Below, in pieces: positions 2,077-39,111 of a DNA stretch of 39,111 nt. The stretch comes from Octopus sinensis (lineage: Eukaryota): the NCBI RefSeq assembly GCF_006345805.1, contig NW_021835307.1, positions 1-39,111 on the forward strand, in the 5' to 3' direction. Position numbers and translations under genes: made by a program. The notes beneath the pieces are model-generated. The model was not told the DNA's origin. It did no database searches and worked only from the letters and a program-made list of their open reading frames with translations. Position 1 is the first letter of the stretch; each line of letters begins with the position of its first letter.

Positions 2077-19444
<17,368 letters not shown>

Positions 19445-19812
19445 GGTTGGAGATGGAAAGAATTGGTTAGCCTTGAGAATTGGTGATTTTTCCTTTATAA
19501 AGGTCTTTTGCAAAGAATAAGGGAATTCTATATCAAATATTCTTGAGATGAATTGTCTTTAATTTCTTTTCATTTATCTGTTCAGCTGTTTTATAAACTG
19601 CAAAACACAAACAGAATATTGTCACATGTCAGTTGATATTTTAAACCGTTGAATAATTCTTGTTTTATAATTCTTACAATGTCAAATTCTGGTTAAAAAA
19701 AGAAACGAAGAACAATCTTTTCGAGAAGCAGCTTTACATTCATTCATCTTGTGGTTTGACCAGCCGCAGCTACCACCTCTGGTGGACGGCTTTATAGCAA
19801 TTAAGTGAAATA

Positions 19813-20010
19813 AAGTAGCTTGCTTACAACCACATAGATCCGGGTTCGGTTCCACTGCGTGGCACTTTGGCCATGTATCTACTGCTACAGCCTCGGGCCG
19901 ACCAAAGACTTGTGAGTGGATTTGGTAGACGGAAACTGAAAAGAAGCCTGTTGTATACACACACACACACAAACACATATACACACACACAAACACACAC
20001 ACACACACAC
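19813..20010 (+). mobile_element. SINE family A head and body
   Basis: gtagcttgcttac...gggttcggttccactgcgtggcac...gaaactgaaaagaagcc followed by (CA)n. A detached tail lies at about 20590-20730. Confidence 0.8.
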
Positions 20011-22123: not shown

Positions 22124-22339
22124 AGGCAGAGACGTGGCTAGGTGGTACGTAACTTGCTTACCAACCACGTGGTTCTGGGTTCAGTCCCACAGCATGGCAC
22201 CTTAGGCAAGTCTCTTCCACTATAGCCTCAGGCCGACCAAAGCCTTGTGAGTGGATTTGGCAGACAGAAACTGAAAGAAGCCCGTCGTATATGTACATAT
22301 GTGTGTGTGTGTGTGCGTGTGTGTGTGTGTGTTTGTGTC

Positions 22340-22373
<34 letters not shown>

Positions 22374-27529: not shown

Positions 27530-28255
27530 TATAAATCACGACCTGCAGATGACTTTGGATTCTACAACAACTCTTCTGGATGATCCTCTTGGTTAAGTTC
27601 CAGAATGCTGCCATAACCCTTGCCTTCAGTTCATTTCTAGTGTCTCAAGGAATTTTGTTGGTCTGTCGCTCAACTGCGCTTCACACATAGCAATCAAGAG
27701 GGTTGCAGTGTGTGGAGTTAGGTGGCCAGATTCTAGGAGTAATGTGGTCGCAGAAATTGTCTGACAGATGAGGACTAGGTTCTCCTACTTGTGTGCCATG
27801 GGCCAGAGTCCTGTTGCCAGACATAGGATCTTCCAGCAGCCACCCTCATGATTCAGGACACTATTACCTCCTCCAGGCACTTCATGCATCTCCATTTTGA
27901 GCCTGGGGCCGTGTAGAATGCTGAATGGAGGTATAACATCACCATCACTATTGATCACTCCAAAAAACTTCGTAATCACCATTAGACTCATCCAATTCTT
28001 TCCAAATCGTCTGCATTGTCCTCGGATTGACAGCCATATACTACGAAATGTTCGTATTGGATCTTCTGGCGTGAATGCCAAGCAGTACAGCATGTCGTTT
28101 CTTAATTGCTGAGTGAATGAATTATGTCATGGTGCTGTGTTTCTCACAACAGAACCTGCTATACTGTGTAGTCAACAAAAAAAAACAAAAGCAATCAATA
28201 CGCATGCGCCGAACAAAAAATATAAATGGCGACAATTTACCCATCGCAGACAGTA
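27530..28255 (-). mobile_element. Tc1/mariner (maT-like) transposon, internally deleted
   Basis: FFGVINSDGDVIPPF, WQQDSGP, IWPPNS..CNPLD.YV and ELKARVMAAF motifs, with frameshifts. Confidence 0.85.
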
Positions 28256-28259
28256 TGTA

Positions 28260-28800
28260 TTTGTGTGTTGATAAATTAATTCCTCTAATGAATTTATCAA
28301 CACATAATTGTTATTAAATAATATTTCTTTGAATTCATTATTACACAATGAAAAATAATTACTCCCTATACCAGTGGTTTTCAACCAGGGTTCCGCCAGT
28401 ACAGTGCAGGGGTTCCGCAAGAAGTTACAAAACTGCTAAATTCGGGAGTAATTTTTAATTCTCTTGTGCAGATATGTGTGCATAAGACTATTAAATTATT
28501 GCACAGGGGTTCCTCGAGCCAGTTGAATGTTTCCTTGGGGTTCCGCTCCAGCAAAAAGTTTGAAAAGCAATGCCCTATACAATATGATTTAGCCCTACAA
28601 ATAATCTCTCGAGTTAATTTATATTTAATGGATCTAGATTTAAGGTCCCAAATATATTTACTGAGACCTGTTGAATTTATTAGATTTTTATTCCCAAAAG
28701 AATACATATTTTGAGCTACTCTTGATTTAATTTTATTCGAAGAGGACCCTATATAAATAGTGTTCAAATTATGATAATTCAAATTCTTATCATATATTAA
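28260..28800 (-). mobile_element. Penelope-like GIY-YIG fragment interrupted by a hAT MITE
   Basis: YIGSSSNKIKSR...STGLSKYIWDLK...EIICRAKSYCIG, resuming after the insert as SNYFSLCNNEFKEIL. Confidence 0.8.
28372..28572. mobile_element. hAT-type MITE with 8-bp target site duplication
   Basis: Imperfect TIRs cagtggttttcaa / ttgaaaagcaatg. TSD ccctatac at 28364-28371 and 28573-28580. Confidence 0.85.
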
Positions 28801-29290
28801 AGACTACATTATAGACTACATTATCTAAATTACAATTATTATTATATTTACATATATATATGGGAGTGTGTATATGTATATTTATATATACATAAATTCG
28901 CCCTCTGAACTTTTTAAATCCTCTCCTAAACTCTCTGACGAAGCCTAGAGACACACCCAAGTACCCTAATTTTATCCACCGATCACTACATTACATTGAG
29001 AAGATAGAAATAACACGTGGAGTACTGTAACATCTTGGCAGAAGCAGCTGTTCTTATTCCTCTATTGAAGAAATTACTAGTACTTTATATATGTAAAACA
29101 CACATGTATATATATTCTCATAATTGTTTAAAATAAATAAATAAATAGACATAATATAATGGCTAACAGTTGATACATACTACATCAGTATCTCCTCCAT
29201 TTTTTCTTACTGTGTATATATATGTAAATATATATATATATACATACGTACATATGTATATGTATGTACATATACATACGTACAATATAT

Positions 29291-29322
<32 letters not shown>

Positions 29323-29437
29323 GTGTGTGTGTGTGTGTGTGTGTAAATATATATATATACATATATATTTTATATATACATATATATAGTTCGTTTAAAT
29401 ATTTGTTGTGCAAAATGACCATTCCGAAAATATAACA

Positions 29438-29483
<46 letters not shown>

Positions 29484-30246
29484 AGCAATCTCTCCTGTAC
29501 CTCCACCACCATTCCCATAACTTCCTGGTGACTACAATGGGTATTTGTCGTATCTAAGCGTGATCGACACAAAAAACTCCAGTAAAACAATACCCATGAG
29601 AACAATACCCAATAAAATGCAATTCGATCTTTTCTCAACAACTCCTTCTCTGTTCGATCTTCTCTTACTACCACTCTTCCTCGTTCCTAAGGAACACATA
29701 TATGTCGATATGCGAAGAGAGGTAAACACATTCTGACACAACGTTTAGAGACAGTCATTGCTGTATCTGAGCCAAAGTTCTGAGCCAAAGTTCCGTCCTG
29801 AAGAGAACCAACGTTTCCACGCAACAAATCACTTGTCTCGCATTAAGGTAACTTATTTATTCCTTTATTTCTCCTCATATCTCTTTTGCTTTTAGATCAC
29901 GTTTGATATGTTTTAATTTCTGAAAGAAAGAAAAGAAGCATCAGGACCCGAAAGATGCTGATAGGCTCAGCACAAAGGAAGTAAATGTTAGGCAGGCCCG
30001 TTTTCTTTAAGGGTCAGACTCGACAGAGAAAAGGTGATTGAAAAGTAACTTTATCTCCGGGTGTGTATGCAAATTATTGATGGTGAGGTAATTCCAATTT
30101 AAGAAGTCATTCATTGCATGGTATTTCGAAAGAAATTACCTGATTTTACAGCGTATAGCTTTACAAGTCACAGAAATTGCAAGAATGGTATGGCAGCTGT
30201 AATATGGGTAAGATGAGCAAATTGGTTCAATTCTCTCCCTCCCCTC

Positions 30247-30286
<40 letters not shown>

Positions 30287-30309
30287 CTCTCTATCTACCT
30301 ATCTAACAT

Positions 30310-31080
30310 GTGTGTGTGTGTGTGTGTATTTCTTCTATGCACGGCCATAACGCTGGATCAGTCTGTACCAAATTGACCATGAAAAATTTTTCCATTACTC
30401 GGGAAACGTTCGGTGACGGTGGTTTACTAAATTTTAAACTTTTTTCAAAAACATAAATATGATTCACAAACGTCGGTTTTGTTTTTTTCGCTTTAAAGGC
30501 AAATGATTCTGATAGAAGCAAACACGATATTGAATAATTCTCCGTCATACGGCTACGACCGCATCTCTTTCTTTTTTTTAATTAAAGATAAACACTTTTA
30601 ATTGTGATAAAGAAAGAAGGGGTTTAGTCCTCACCGCCAAAATTTATTTCTCTTCGGAAATATAAGGGTGACGATGTCTTCATTCCACGGATCTCACCTC
30701 ACCTCCCCTGTGAATTTAAACTGCTCCAGTTCGAAAGTTTTGCTATGTCCATAAACAAATCTCAAGCACAATCTCTCAACGTTGTTGGACTTAATCTTGC
30801 TTCTCTGATGGGCAATTATATGTTGGATGTTCGGGAGTTGGAAGTCCCAGAACTCTTTTTCTTTGTACACCAATTAAAGGACACACTGAAAACATTGTCT
30901 ATTTAGAAGTTCTACATAATTAAACTGTGATTGATTTCAGGATTTGCTTTAATAACCCTTTGTTTATACCCACGTCAACTGACAGACTTTTTCTGAAAAT
31001 ATGTTTTTTTATCAGTATGAATATATTTATTTCCTTTAACATTCCTTTAACTTCCGAGCAACGCCGGATACTTTTATAAT
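30310..31080 (+). mobile_element. Helitron remnant with Pif1-type helicase C-terminus (30667-30923)
   Basis: GDDVFIPRI...FAMSINKSQAQSL..VGLNL...GQLYVGCS...TENIVYLEVL-stop, the Helitron helicase motifs. GC-rich gagcaacgccgg near 31060. Confidence 0.85.
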
Positions 31081-31402
31081 GATAAAAGATAAAATTGTTA
31101 AAAACTTTATCAGCGGCCAGCATATAAAAATAGACCAATTAAGGTAAAATCAACATATAATTATAATCAAGTCAGAGAAAAATCTTTCCTATATACCGAA
31201 AAGAGACGTTAAATCGTCTAACCCCTTTAAATCATCATTTCAACACGTGTGTAATCTTGTGATGAATTAAATTGGTCAGACGGTTAGGTTTGTATATATG
31301 TATGTATCTGTGAACTACGTATGTACACTTTGTTATTATGGATTTGATACAATTGATTGATGTTCTTGTTTCAGGTGAATTTGCAAATACAAACGAGTTG
31401 CA

Positions 31403-31510
31403 ATGTCTCATCTTCTTGGTGTAGGGGATGTGGTAACAATAAGTGTTGATGAGAAAACATTGAAGAAAAACCAAGAAGATCATGGAGGCTGGGATTTCCG
31501 TTTGTCAAGT
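31403..31510 (+). CDS. Mib-repeat gene coding exon 1 (MSHLLGVGDV...HGGWDFRLSS)
   Basis: Exon starts at acceptor ttcttgtttcag|31375. An in-frame TGA lies upstream of the ATG within the same exon. Donor agt|gtaagt at 31511. Confidence 0.9.
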
Positions 31511-31562
31511 GTAAGTGCTCTCTTCTCACTTGCTTTATTATTATCATTATTATTATTATTAA

Positions 31563-31618
<56 letters not shown>

Positions 31619-33438
31619 ACTAGCGGATCCCGTGCCGTCAAAAATGACGGCTTTTTGTAGTATTCTATATATAAATAAGGTACAAAATCAAGTTTTTAGT
31701 CTTATAAATCTTTTATTACCAAATTTTTGCGTAAAATCTAACTCTGTTTAGTTTATGAAGAGTTACTGAAAGAACTCTGGGTAAAATTTCTTAATATAAA
31801 TATATTAAGACATATGTAAACAAACAAATTTATTTTCGAAGCGTTTAAATGAATTATAGAATAAGTAGACAGATACATTTTATTCAACGCATAGATACTA
31901 ATGTTTGTGTAGGTGTGTGTGATTGTAATAATCGTTTTTAACCAAACAGATAAAAAGTTTTATTCAACGCATAGGTACTAAACCGGTCAGGCGGTTTAGC
32001 TTAAATGGTAAAGCATTCCCACCGGATAATAGAAGGATGTGAGATCGATCCTCATGGCTGGCGACCGACAAACTTTCTGCTTTTAAAAAGAGAAAATGGA
32101 TTTTATCCTATATATATATAGGACAAAATCCTAATTTTTTTTCTTTGATGATTGTTTTTCCAGGATGATTCTATAACTGCAGAAGAATTTGGCGGTCAGG
32201 TAGTTTAGCTTAAATGGTAAAGTATTCCAATCGGATATTAGAGGGAAATTTTTCTGCTTTAAAAAGAAAATTTTCTGCTTTAAAAAGAAAAAAAAAGATT
32301 TTATCCTTTATACATATACTGTTCAGTATCTATGCGTTGAATGAAATTTATCTGTCTACTTGTTCTACAAATTAAGACATGCATAAACTGTTAGATGAAG
32401 ATGTGTATTTATAATGTACCTTTCAACAACAGTTGTTTTATATTCATGATACACTCAGTCAATAATTATTATCCCTAATGAGTTTGTATATTGATATGTT
32501 TGTGTAGGTGTGTCTGATTGTAATAACCGTTTTTAACGAAACAGATAAAAAGAATATGGATGGTAAATCAAATTAATACTTTTGTCAATGCTATCTCGTG
32601 GTCGTCTTGAGATGTGACATCGATCATCGTTTGTTACTGAAAGAACACTGGTTCACACGTACAAACATTCACATAGTTCACTTGTACACGCACACGCATA
32701 CACACATATACTCGCACAGAGTTGAAATGCTGTTTGAATTTTCTTTTTCACCCCATCCTTTCTTATTCCCCTATCATCTTCCTTTCTCATTCATGTATTG
32801 AGACGGAGAAAGACACAAGAGTATTAGTATTATTATATCACCATCCCACTTCCATTGCACACACACACACATACACACACAAACATTCACATACCTCCCT
32901 TTTCCCTTTTCACATACACACATATTTTCACACAGAGTTGAAACGCTGTTTGATTTTTTCGCCCCTCCCTTCCTTATCTATCACACCTTCCTTTCTCATT
33001 CATACGTTGTGACGGTGAAATTCACAGAGAGTATTATCATAGTAGATTATTTTGCTTAATGATCATTGAAAACTATAATACTGACCTAGGTGTAAATGTG
33101 ATCGTGTTTAACAGAAGTTCGCTTCAAGATTCTGTTTATTTCGGGTCCATTCATTTTGATCACGCTGATCACATGTGCGTTTGTATGTATGTATGTGCGT
33201 TTGTATATATGTATGTGTGTATGTATATATATGTGTGTGTATGTATGTATGTGTGTGTATTTATATATTTATGTATGAATGTTAAATGATTTTTTTCTAA
33301 ATCCAGCTTATAGGTGATGTTGGTGAAGTTACGGGAATCGATTATAGAAGAGATGCAAGTGTGAAATTCAAGAAATACAATGACGTATTTACCATTAATT
33401 CAGCGAGTCTCTTAGTTTACAATCCTGAACAGAAATGA
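31403..33438 (+). CDS. Two-exon CDS, 79-aa stand-alone Mind bomb SH3-like (REP) repeat protein
   Basis: Exons 31403-31510 and 33307-33438 give MSHLLGVGDVVTISVDEKTLKKNQEDHGGWDFRLSSLIGDVGEVTGIDYRRDASVKFKKYNDVFTINSASLLVYNPEQK*. This matches the Mib repeat pattern VGD-V-(x)-D---L---Q--HGGW ... IG--G-V--I----D--V-F ... FT-N---L. Phase-0 intron with canonical sites. Confidence 0.85.
31620..32560 (-). mobile_element. Non-autonomous Helitron-like element (3' terminus at 31620) carrying tRNA-like units
   Basis: Minus-strand 3' end CTAG|T with hairpin gccgtca-aaaa-tgacggc (31634-31651) 10 nt inside. The 5' boundary is uncertain. Confidence 0.6.
31990..32064 (+). pseudogene. Degenerate tRNA-like sequence (second partial copy 32193-32245)
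   Basis: A-box-like tagcttaaatggtaaagc and T-arm gtgag-atcgatc-ctcat are present. Acceptor and anticodon stems do not pair. Confidence 0.5.
33307..33438 (+). CDS. Mib-repeat gene coding exon 2 (LIGDVGEV...NPEQK-stop)
   Basis: Acceptor ttttctaaatccag|. TGA at 33436-33438 followed by g|gtgagt donor. Confidence 0.88.
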   Translation, partial: LIGDVGEVTGIDYRRDASVKFKKYNDVFTINSASLLVYNPEQK

Positions 33439-33599
33439 GGTGAGTTATTACTTCTGTTGCTCATTACCACTTAAATATTTAAAGAAACAAGTGTATTCTG
33501 CTGAACATATACTAACATATTTACGATAAGTCACTTCTCATTGAGATGCTGACAAACTCATTTCTATTCCAATGAATTACAAAGTGCATTCCAGACGTT

Positions 33600-34300
33600 T
33601 TGAGTCTTTTTCCAAAGAGGTACAAAACCCTAATCTCTTTCAGAGTAGGTCCCTCTGTCTTCAGTACACTTTTTACGACACTCCATTCGTTTAGTGATGG
33701 ACCCATAGTAGTCCTCGAAAGTGAAGCTGTCCAGGACACTTCTCACAACCCGCTTCATCTTCACTTTGAACTTGGCGAACAAGCAAAATCCGCAGGGAGC
33801 AAGGCCTAGACTTTAGGATGGCTGAGGGATAGTTTTGGTGCGAATCTCTGTCAAGTAATTAGGGTCGTGAACGGAATATCGACTGATGAACCCCACTGCG
33901 GCAGGCGTTCTGGCCTTTTGTGACGAAATATATTCCTGAACTCACTCAAAATCTCTAAATATTTTCTTTGGTGGCCCTCTACCCAAAGGGAACCCAGCGG
34001 ATATCGGTGATGCCTTTGCAGTGAAGAAAGGGTGGGTATCACCAGAATCACCCTAGTGGATTTGCTGTTCCTGATATCTGGTCTTATCGCAAAGCAGATT
34101 CTTGGCTCACTCAAGTTAATCCATAAACAGCCTGCAACATTTCGTAAGTGCCTGTGGAGTTTCGCGCCGGCTGTAACACAAATCTTCATTGCACAGCAGC
34201 TTTCCAATTTGTCGTCACGTCCCGATTGCCTTCTGCAAATCAGTCAGCTGTGACAAGCAATGTACATTACGGTGTTTTCAAAGTGTTGTTACAGCCGTCT
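33600..34300 (-). mobile_element. mariner transposase remnant
   Basis: RFVLQPA..TGTYEMLQAVYG at the N-terminus. LAPCGFCLFAKFK (SPDLAPCDF-like) ...RMECRKKC...GTYSE at the C-terminus. Many stops. Confidence 0.75.
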
Positions 34301-35090: not shown

Positions 35091-35301
35091 GTATATGTTA
35101 AACAATTTATCACATTTATTTGCATAAATACAGCGAAAGGCAAATGTGGATTAATGTTCAGATGGCGGTGCGCCAGCATGGCCACAGCTTGTGAACTGAA
35201 ACTAGATAAAATAAAAATAAAATGAAATAAATCTACTATACTGTATTTATGGGATAAATGATTTATCACATGTAAAGACAGGGCAGTCACAGATATTGTG
35301 G

Positions 35302-35700
35302 TTTACTCTTTTACTCTTTTACTTGATTCAGTCATTTGAATGCGGCCATGCTGGAGCGCCGCCTTTAATCGAGCAAATCGACCCCGGGACTTATTCTTTG
35401 TAATCCCAGTACTTATTCTATCAGTCTCTTTTGCCGAACCGCTAAGTGACGGGGACGTAAACACACCAGCATCGGTTGTCAAGCAATGCTATGGGGACAA
35501 ACAGACACACAAACACACGCACACGCATGTATATATACATATATACGACGGGCTTCTTTCAGTTTCCGTCTGCCAAATCCACTCACAAGGCATTGGTCGG
35601 CCTGGGGCTATAGCAGAAGACACTTACACAAGGTGCCACGCAGTGGGACTGAACCCGGAATCATGTGGTTGGTAAGCAAGCTAATTACCACACAGCCACC
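35302..35700 (-). mobile_element. SINE family A
   Basis: Full-length reverse copy. Further fragments at about 260-370, 1572-1698, 10595-10720, 12110-12350, 12850-12955 and 35140-35210. Confidence 0.85.
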
Positions 35701-35981
35701 CCTTTGTTTATATTTTGTAATATTTTGTTGTGTCTCTGTCCATTCTCACTTCAAATATTGCCACAATTAACTTAGACTTACATCTTTCTTAAAACTCGGT
35801 CTCTTTCAAAGCTCCTTATCCTTTACAAACGACCCTCATTAAACAGACTTTCTACTCCACACCTTCTCTATCAGATCATTTGAACCTTCCTTTAAATCTA
35901 TATCTTATAGAACACACACACACACACTCCGATTCTGTCTGTCTGTCTATTTTCTCTCTATTTATATCTCTCTGTCTCTGT

Positions 35982-38014: not shown

Positions 38015-38600
38015 CGAGTCTTACAGAAGGAATATAAGAGACGCCACGACAATATAGCCAGGCTTGTCCATTGGACACTCTGCAACAAGTATGGAGTTGA
38101 CAGAGCAAAAAATTAGTACGATCACAAACCCGAATGCATCGTCGAAAATAAAAACACAAAGATCCTATGGCATTTTATGATTGAGTGCGACCATGAGATA
38201 GAGAATAGGAAGCAAGATATAGTCTTAACTGAGAAAGAAAACAAACTATGCTGGATCATAGACATAGCATGCCCAGCTGACAACAAGGTATGCGATAAGG
38301 AAGAAAGAAAAGTCGAGAGATGCGACAGGTTAGCTTGGGAAGTTAAGCAGTTGTGGTTGCTGAAAAAGGTGGTAGTAGTACCAATAATTGTCGGAGCCCT
38401 GGGAACAGTGAGCAAAAATCTCGAGAAGTATGTGGAACAAATAGGGGCTGCAGGAAGAGTGGAGCACTTGCAGGAACAGCACGGCTTGGAACTGCCCGAA
38501 CACACCGGAAGGTGCTCGGAAAATAAGAGGTGGTACCTTAGTTCACTGGTAGTGGAAAGCTGACGCCGTACTACATGGAAATACAATAAATAATAATGAT
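38015..38600 (+). mobile_element. R4/Dong-like non-LTR retrotransposon 3' fragment (restriction-like endonuclease)
   Basis: EYKRRHDNIARLVHW...ILW...RKQDIVL...IIDIACP...VVPIIVGALG...RKVLG-stop, then a short 3' UTR and a (TAA)n-rich tail. Confidence 0.9.
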
Positions 38601-38665
38601 AATAATTGTGTTGTAACTCCTCCTTCGATATTGTCCTCCCTTGTGACCGACGAAAGAAATTACTA

Positions 38666-38719
<54 letters not shown>

Positions 38720-38724
<5 letters not shown>

Positions 38725-39111
38725 GAGTGAGAGAGCAGTTCATGCCATCAAAGTGACACTGGGGTAAAATATACGAAGCCCAGTATACCCATCATGACTA
38801 CCCGTCTGATAAAGGTACACCAGGCACATGCATCACAACCATATGTGCGCGACATGGTGATCTCATATCAAGATAAACAGCACATGACCTTGCAGGTGGG
38901 GCCCAGTTAGAATTTTCTTCAGATTGAGTAACCCATCCCGCTCAAACGGTCCCTGAATAAGGGTTGTTTAAGGATGTTGAAAGAACCACCCATGTTTCCA
39001 GAGGTGAACTATTCAAAACCCAAAGAATCCCTCTCAACACATGGCTATGATGCTCCCCCACTACTTCTGCTCATGATCAGAGATGCACATATCGTCAACC
39101 ACTAAGGGACA
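38720..39111. mobile_element. High-copy interspersed repeat, unclassified, truncated by the window edge
   Basis: Begins at a (TTA)n tract. Recalled as a very common octopus repeat; class not determinable here. Confidence 0.45.

Follow-up and report, generated by a model that had tools for sequence, protein, structure and literature searches.

Analysis of a 39,111-nucleotide (nt) stretch of the Octopus sinensis genome (contig NW_021835307.1, positions 1 to 39,111; referred to here as the window) revealed a two-exon open reading frame (ORF) of 79 codons that encodes one complete Mind bomb (Mib) repeat of the REP/SH3_15 type and nothing else. Comparison with related sequences identifies this locus as a true member of a small family of octopod genes, each of which encodes a protein of about 80 amino acids (aa) with one repeat. 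On balance, and with modest confidence, the locus is judged to be a genuine, still-usable stand-alone gene. The original prediction, which was made from the sequence of the window alone, had described the ORF as a free single repeat that might represent a decoy or adaptor or a new lineage-specific small-protein family.

Gene structure

The 79-codon ORF results from the in-frame join of two exons on the forward strand (31375-31510 and 33307-33439). Exon 1 follows the acceptor ttgtttcag/G at 31374/31375, as read from the sequence (a slash marks an exon border), and carries a 5' leader (31375-31402) that includes an in-frame TGA at 31376-31378; its start reads ttgtttcag/G TGA ATT TGC AAA TAC AAA CGA GTT GCA ATG. 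Translation starts at the ATG at position 31403. Coding part 1 (31403-31510; 36 codons, MSHLLGVGDVVTISVDEKTLKKNQEDHGGWDFRLSS) comprises the first half of the SH3_15 repeat and ends at the donor AGT/gtaagt. The intron (31511-33306; 1796 nt) is in phase 0 and lies inside the domain. Coding part 2 (33307-33438; 43 codons, LIGDVGEVTGIDYRRDASVKFKKYNDVFTINSASLLVYNPEQK, plus the stop codon TGA at 33436-33438) follows the acceptor aatccag/CTT and comprises the second half of the repeat and a short tail that corresponds to intron sequence in the ligase genes; the stop is located 8 codons beyond the end of the domain. The last exon base together with a consensus donor, G/GTGAGT, occupies positions 33439-33445 (donor bases 33440-33445), and exon 2 measures 133 nt. 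The 79-aa product contains the peptides LIGDVGEVTGIDYR, VGDVVTISVDEK, and TLKKNQEDHGGWDFR.

The structural claims of the original prediction were confirmed: an in-frame stop precedes the ATG in the same exon, the two-exon join yields the quoted 79-aa protein, and all four splice sites match the consensus, with start and stop in place. The ORF is closed at both ends and lies within exons whose borders are shared by its relatives. The predicted range, 31375-33445, holds for the exon pair, but the coding sequence ends at 33438, and 33445 is the end of the donor consensus; a candidate upstream exon with its own ATG (30118-30207) falls outside this range. Because a donor directly follows the stop codon, an intron in the 3' untranslated region and a further downstream exon are implied. 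Since the outer splice sites are ancient, the mRNA would comprise at least one upstream and at least one downstream noncoding exon.

Identity of the encoded domain

Pfam analysis of the spliced product gave a match to SH3_15 (PF18346) of 45.1 bits (E=1.3e-11) that extended over profile positions 2-67 of 67; the curated gathering cut-off of this family is 24 bits. Taken separately, the two exon pieces scored 23.5 bits (coding part 1) and 14.2 bits (coding part 2). With a hidden Markov model (HMM) of the family, coding part 1 reached 34.5 bits (positions 7-41) and coding part 2 reached 28.6 bits (positions 42-83), and both half-domain scores are within the range of ligase repeats. The HMMER/Pfam check proposed with the original prediction was positive, and the claim of one complete Mib repeat stands. 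The claim that the motif residues are intact was borne out in part. In an alignment of 376 domains, which was inspected for the conserved core pattern G.D.V ... Q.GHGGW ... G..G.V ... DGD..V ... W.FNP..L, the window protein kept 12 of the 14 best-conserved columns (at least 75%) and 18 of the 30 columns conserved at 45% or more. The core was changed from GHGGW to DHGGW, from DGD to RRD, from W.FNP to F.INS, and from M to L.

The fold assignment is in line with the sequence match. A phmmer search matched the product to the REP structure of MIB1 (Protein Data Bank entry 4TSE) with E=2.8e-10. An AlphaFold2 model, generated from a five-sequence family alignment, reached a predicted local distance difference test score (pLDDT) of 89.3 and a predicted template modeling score (pTM) of 0.78. 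The top Foldseek matches of this model were 4TSE and 4XI6 (TM score, 0.79 to 0.83; root mean square deviation, 1.4 to 1.6), and the first non-MIB match appeared only at E=0.02. The solved relatives are limited to the MIB1 REP structures 4TSE and 4XI6/7/B. In the model, the product thus forms an SH3-like barrel that is superposable on the MIB1 REP crystal structure.

Absence of other ligase domains in the window

The 39-kb window was searched for other parts of a MIB ligase by tblastn with 136 relatives, including MZM-bearing ones such as P0009, and by a permissive HMM scan of every open piece in all six frames. The tblastn search matched only the two repeat exons and an upstream exon (exon 0, described below), and the HMM scan revealed a single SH3_15 repeat. 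By these searches, the MZM, ankyrin, and RING parts and the tandem repeats that characterize MIB1/MIB2 ligases were all absent from the window; these negatives apply within its 39 kb, and exons past its end lie outside their scope. No Pfam match was obtained with ten flanking ORF pieces of the window. Exact-sequence look-ups returned no match for the 79-aa product, for its O. bimaculoides relative P0016, for the O. sinensis ligase P0044, or for the products of exon 0 joined to exon 1 or to exon 2. The 79-aa gene is absent from public protein sets.

The REP region of MIB1 (4TSE/4XI6/4XI7) belongs to the same domain family as the window protein and shares its SH3-like fold, but the identity between them is only 27-31%, and MIB1 carries two tandem repeats between its MZM and ANK/RING parts, whereas the window encodes a single repeat alone. 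Judged from the sequence, the window encodes a REP-type SH3-like module that derives from the first repeat of a ligase and has no catalytic or scaffold part.

An octopod family of one-repeat proteins

An exhaustive profile-free search of 1.8 billion representatives yielded 126 matches. Nearly all of them were long multi-repeat proteins with 30-40% identity; the best single-domain matches were short octopod proteins, which are annotated in three octopod genomes. Two types were distinguished. Type B includes the window protein and the 84-aa Octopus bimaculoides protein A0A0L8FXJ4 (P0016), which is 52-54% identical to it; the two form a clade with a support of 0.92. Type A consists of an 81-aa Octopus vulgaris protein (P0136, locus L003) and two tandem copies of 81 aa in Argonauta hians (GAB1602226/GAB1602228, corresponding to P0124/P0127 in loci L001/L002), each with one repeat. 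A0A0L8FXJ4, an unreviewed entry that bears the label "Mind bomb SH3 repeat domain-containing protein," resembles the window protein in its single repeat, its homologous Met-Ser start, and a stop a few codons past the domain. It differs in its Cys-rich N terminus (MSGCSDSC), in a stop one codon earlier, and in its Pfam score of 59 bits.

The genes of the family share their architecture. The type A loci L001-L003 and the window have two coding exons with the same intron position in the domain, and exon 2 is exactly 133 nt long in the window (33307-33439), in O. vulgaris (L003, 11017-11149), and in A. hians (L001, 12302-12434). In the family loci, the stop TGA lies 1-10 nt ahead of a consensus GT donor. 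A phase-0 intron at HMM position 43/44 was found in all 11 octopod SH3_15 units (L001, L003, L005, L006, and the window). The type A genes resemble the window gene also in their 5' junction but are only 35-40% identical to it, start with MGL..S, and display strong purifying selection. Conservation between the type A loci of O. vulgaris and Argonauta is confined to the two coding exons. For this pair, the nonsynonymous divergence (dN) was 0.09 and the synonymous divergence (dS) was saturated (proportion of synonymous differences [pS], 0.74), and start, stop, and length were identical. Since these features were kept at a dN of 0.09 against a saturated dS, the stand-alone one-repeat protein appears to be a real, selected octopod gene type, and the sequences indicate strong purifying selection on the type A subfamily.

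These results agree with the suggestion of a lineage-specific small-protein family, as one-repeat models of about 80 aa exist in O. bimaculoides, O. vulgaris, and A. hians. The family is new in the sense that such proteins were not described in the literature searched on SH3_15 and octopus Mind bomb; its members are already present in databases as uncharacterized predictions. At least two subfamilies of such mini-genes are therefore present in octopod genomes, adjacent to MIB-like ligase genes that lack the MZM.

A further candidate for a stand-alone protein was rejected. P0049 (81 aa) from a Tara Oceans metagenome was considered as a fifth case, but its "Met" is a TTG that a gene caller for prokaryotes assigned on a eukaryotic fragment of 987 bp. 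This sequence (L004, 170-415) most likely represents a single exon of a multi-repeat gene from a eukaryote, and short SH3_15 "proteins" of metagenomic origin are not to be included among the stand-alone genes. Regarding genomic neighbors, a cytochrome P450 gene adjoins the Argonauta type A mini-gene (L001, 1-5620, reverse strand), and in O. bimaculoides an opposite-strand P450 model spans the entire MIB2-like ligase locus (L006, 1-68990, reverse strand), an arrangement that points to conserved synteny between a P450 gene and the SH3_15 gene cluster.

Origin from the 5' end of a MIB-like ligase gene

The nearest ligase relatives of the window gene are MZM-less MIB-like genes and not canonical MIB1/2. 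They comprise O. bimaculoides XP_014786080.1 (772 aa), O. sinensis XP_036369490.1 (509 aa), and an O. vulgaris gene in locus L005. These ligases begin directly with about three SH3_15 repeats and continue with ankyrin repeats and RING. The same phase-0 intron interrupts each of the SH3_15 repeats. Their first coding exon (acceptor, leader, and ATG) and the exon pair of repeat 1 are homologous to the window gene; unlike it, they continue in frame through two to three more repeats, ankyrin, and RING.

Comparison of the 5' junctions revealed a common pattern, cag/GTGAATTT...ATG, which is homologous in the window, the ligase XP_014786080.1, the O. vulgaris MIB-like gene, and the type A mini-genes. 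The junction reads tttcag/GTGAATTTGCAAATACAAACGAGTTGCA ATG in the window, tttcag/GTGAATTTGTATTTGTAGAAACA ATG at the first coding exon of the O. bimaculoides MIB2-like ligase XP_014786080.1, tttcag/TTGAATTAGAATTTGCGGAAACA ATG in the O. vulgaris MIB-like gene, and ttccag/GTGAATTTATAGAGACA ATG in O. vulgaris type A. Since the leader differs between relatives by 1-nt and 4-nt indels, it is noncoding. The ATG of the window is homologous to the ligase start codon, and the upstream sequence is therefore a true leader and not lost coding sequence. At the other end, the ligase splice donor after repeat 1 (AAG/GTTAGT) is mutated in the mini-genes, to AAG GTC AAT in type A and to TTA GTT TAC in the window, and a second GT donor 22-25 nt further 3' is present in both subfamilies. 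As the ligase donor is lost, the frame enters the former intron for 3-8 codons and then meets TGA.

The simplest reading of these sequences is that the mini-genes are truncated duplicates of the 5' end of a ligase gene with loss of a donor. On this comparison, the 5' end of a MIB-like REP-ANK-RING ligase gene was duplicated, and the copied piece included both exons of repeat 1 along with the leader acceptor and the start codon. In the duplicate, the donor after repeat 1 was then lost, so that the frame runs 3-8 codons into the former intron and stops, and a new donor 22-25 nt downstream is retained in both subfamilies. The family would thus provide a clean example of how a microprotein can be born when the 5' end of a multidomain gene is duplicated and a donor is lost.

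A conserved upstream ORF ending at the exon 1 TGA had also been considered, as suggested by the 136-nt length of exon 1 in both the window and Argonauta and by a TGA at exon positions 2-4 in three genes. This was ruled out: exon 1 measures 140 nt in O. vulgaris type A and 156 nt in O. vulgaris type B, the TGA is TTA in L005, and the GTGAATTT motif is the conserved start of the ancestral leader. A tblastx comparison revealed no conserved upstream coding exon.

State of the window copy

Positions 27952-31538 of the window are colinear with positions 5664-12012 of the O. vulgaris locus L005, with flanks that are 90-96% identical. L005 contains exon 0, a homolog of exon 1 (MSCCCSDSTNGINVGDMVKISVAEETLRCNKNSHVVWDPRLSR), and, about 7 kb downstream, a MIB-like gene, the repeats of which have orthologs in the ligases of O. 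bimaculoides and O. sinensis. The exon 1 homolog has its HGGW degraded to HVVW, and no counterpart of exon 2 was found in L005. As an observation on this locus, its first-half exon at 11871-11990 is an orphan with no partner.

Several observations weigh against a usable gene in the window. The Pfam score of the window protein is the lowest in the family (45 versus 59-76 bits), and by sequence the copy ranks as its most divergent member, on a fast-evolving type B branch. Exon 1 is changing faster than its flanks: relative to O. vulgaris, 20 of 90 nt differ, compared with 31 of 303 nt (about 10%) in flanking noncoding DNA (Fisher p=0.0065 for the excess). The O. vulgaris counterpart has decayed, with HVVW and no second exon; the Cys-rich N terminus of both type B relatives has been lost in the window; and the exact product is absent from all collections searched. 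With exon 0 as the 5' exon, the ORF would be preceded by several AUGs in other frames. Regarding a role in Notch signaling, SH3_15 repeats occur in many non-MIB proteins, and the domain is not specific to Notch-ligand recognition.

Several of these observations speak for the window copy as a decaying duplicate, a family member by descent that is untranslated or recently inactivated and whose frame is open by chance. The substitutions in exon 1, 18 nonsynonymous and 2 synonymous, give no sign of purifying selection. An open frame by chance is not very improbable, since a stop-free frame persisted at this divergence in about 10% of unconstrained simulations, and transposon fragments are present around the locus and in the intron. 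We nevertheless regard a decaying duplicate as less likely than a usable gene. The four consensus splice sites, the start, and the stop are all present, the 21-nt indel relative to O. vulgaris is in frame, and the structure is predicted confidently. Twelve of the 14 top fold residues are kept, and identity to P0016 is concentrated at conserved columns (19/30, 63%) as opposed to variable ones (16/41, 39%). Moreover, an exon divergence above the intron level is unlike plain neutral decay. The original prediction had proposed that orthologs should keep the same start and stop with a dN/dS below 1. This was found for the type A pair; in the window lineage, dN/dS was 2.6 over 30 codons and did not differ from 1 (p=0.52). 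The excess of changes in exon 1 is compatible with diversifying selection, with gene conversion, or with a mosaic or paralogous history under relaxed selection, among which the 30 codons do not discriminate. The value of this particular locus is limited by the uncertain activity of the copy.

Exon 0 and the possibility of a longer product

Upstream of the ORF, a candidate exon 0 of 30 codons (MVFRKKLPDFTAYSFTSHRNCKNGMAAVIW) extends on the forward strand from an ATG at 30118 to 30207 and ends at the donor TGG/gtaaga (30208). It is identical at 28 of 30 aa to the first exon of the O. vulgaris model CAI9741122.1 (P0107), with a nucleotide identity of 97.8%, is single copy, and occurs, among the sequences compared, only in the window and in L005. 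Exon 0 is in frame with exon 1 in O. vulgaris and, through a 1-nt difference, out of frame in the window. Here, the join of exon 0 to exon 1 leads into another frame with a stop at 31447-31449, and the resulting 54-codon ORF overlaps the ATG of the microprotein.

These features raise the question whether exons 1 and 2 are cassette or alternative 5' exons of the neighboring MIB-like ligase gene, with the 79-codon ORF as a by-product. Such a longer product could arise if exon 0 or exon 1 were spliced to ligase exons beyond the window or if the UGA were recoded. The outer borders of the exon pair are splice sites, so further exons exist on both sides. By synteny, a MIB-like gene is expected just past the window on its 3' side, the donor of exon 1 and all second-half acceptors of the ligase are in phase 0, and exon 0 and the type B exon 1 of O. 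vulgaris are in frame. In addition, CAI9741122.1 (277 aa; L005, 10001-38665) links the exon 0 homolog to MIB-like repeat exons. The model CAI9741122.1, however, connects exon 0 with the second half of repeat 1 of the ligase and skips two good first-half exons, a type B exon at about 11828-11985 and one at 19110-19249 that comes with a leader of the ligase type and an ATG of its own (MGETQSTF). The repeats of the model have their orthologs in a ligase that starts at its own ATG, and the join is probably a prediction artifact of a mis-joined model. A homolog search with P0107 yielded no further octopus models. The window exon 0 does not share the frame of the repeat, and the ATG is preceded by an in-frame TGA; as this ATG is the ancestral ligase start codon, no coding sequence is expected upstream. 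Furthermore, the reading frame of every family member terminates at the end of exon 2, at one of three different codons, and the O. bimaculoides protein begins at the homologous Met. A longer product is on this evidence improbable.

Chance resemblance of two unrelated open stretches to a Mib repeat can be dismissed, short as each piece is, given the E value of the joined product, the correct order, strand, and phase of the two halves, an intron position identical to that in 10 other SH3_15 units, and 54% identity to an annotated octopus protein.

Putative function and N-terminal motifs

MIB-type ligases control Notch-ligand activation. A stand-alone gene of the kind described here would yield a free SH3-like peptide-binding module without a ligase part. 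Most likely, it would occupy short linear motifs or partner surfaces that are recognized by the REP region of MIB-type ligases and would act as a competitor or adaptor rather than as an enzyme. The REP region of MIB1 binds the C-box of Jagged1/Delta tails, and a Drosophila Mib1 variant without the MZM is dominant negative in a REP-dependent manner (PMC11887331). The decoy role toward Delta/Jagged that was put forward in the original prediction is a conjecture for the octopod proteins.

The N termini differ between the subfamilies. Type A proteins start with MGLSISR or MGLGTSK (L003; L001/L002, 10001-10020), which fits the PROSITE-type N-myristoylation pattern, and this pattern is conserved between Octopus and Argonauta. 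The relatives of type B start with MSGCSDSC (P0016) or MSCCCSDS (L005, 11856-11880), a Cys cluster of the S-acylation type, and the O. sinensis MIB-like ligase (P0044) starts with MGAAEST. The window protein starts with MSHLLG and has neither motif; a 21-nt in-frame deletion relative to O. vulgaris took out the Cys-rich segment. These motifs, which are pattern matches only, hint that the family may work at membranes.

It is conceivable, though doubtful, that octopods possess ligase-less single-REP microproteins, some of them membrane anchored, that serve as dominant-negative or adaptor regulators of MIB-type ligases, for instance in Notch-ligand endocytosis, with the window copy as a rapidly diversifying member. 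If true, a conserved natural REP-only protein would represent a ready-made endogenous modulator of Notch-ligand activation. In a bolder variant, the conserved UGA followed by a donor would permit A-to-I editing (UGA to UGG), which would extend the protein into the downstream exon.

Repeats and transposon-like sequences

The window is AT rich and contains many microsatellites and short interspersed element (SINE)-like repeats, which it shares with loci of O. vulgaris, O. bimaculoides, and Argonauta at 80-95% identity, as befits octopod DNA. In the intron of the 79-codon ORF, an (ATT)n run (about 31534-31618) is followed by a 46-nt inverted-repeat pair (31854-31899 and 32325-32370; 91% complementary). 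The pair encloses two tRNA-like fragments that are 87% alike (31984-32037 and 32193-32246). ARAGORN and Rfam gave no call on the window, these fragments included. Direct repeats (31901/32496, 32697/32913, and 32775/32984) and a TG/TA microsatellite (33153-33282) are also present in the intron.

Transposon-like open pieces of 60-150 codons were noticed at 33524-34243 on the reverse strand and at 30628-30903, 38117-38560, and 15454-16468 on the forward strand; none of the transposon-like open pieces of the window reached a Pfam model at E<=0.1. By eye, they look like the C terminus of a mariner-type transposase just 3' of exon 2, a helicase-like piece upstream, and retroelement-like pieces.

Two longer elements recur in the window. 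A 450-bp element at its 3' end (38659-39111) is 95-96% identical to copies in L005 (489-941 and 12321-12767) and L006 (63335-63582), and each copy is preceded by an (ATT)n run. Beyond exon 1, this young repeat obscures the colinearity of the window with L005. At least seven copies of the other element, which is about 400 bp long, are present in the window, in both orientations (9659-10140, 11248-11632, 17031-17404, 17952-18375, 19807-19977, 22134-22350, and 35301-35707). It is repeated in the O. vulgaris, O. bimaculoides, and Argonauta loci with 75-94% identity and is probably an abundant octopod SINE.

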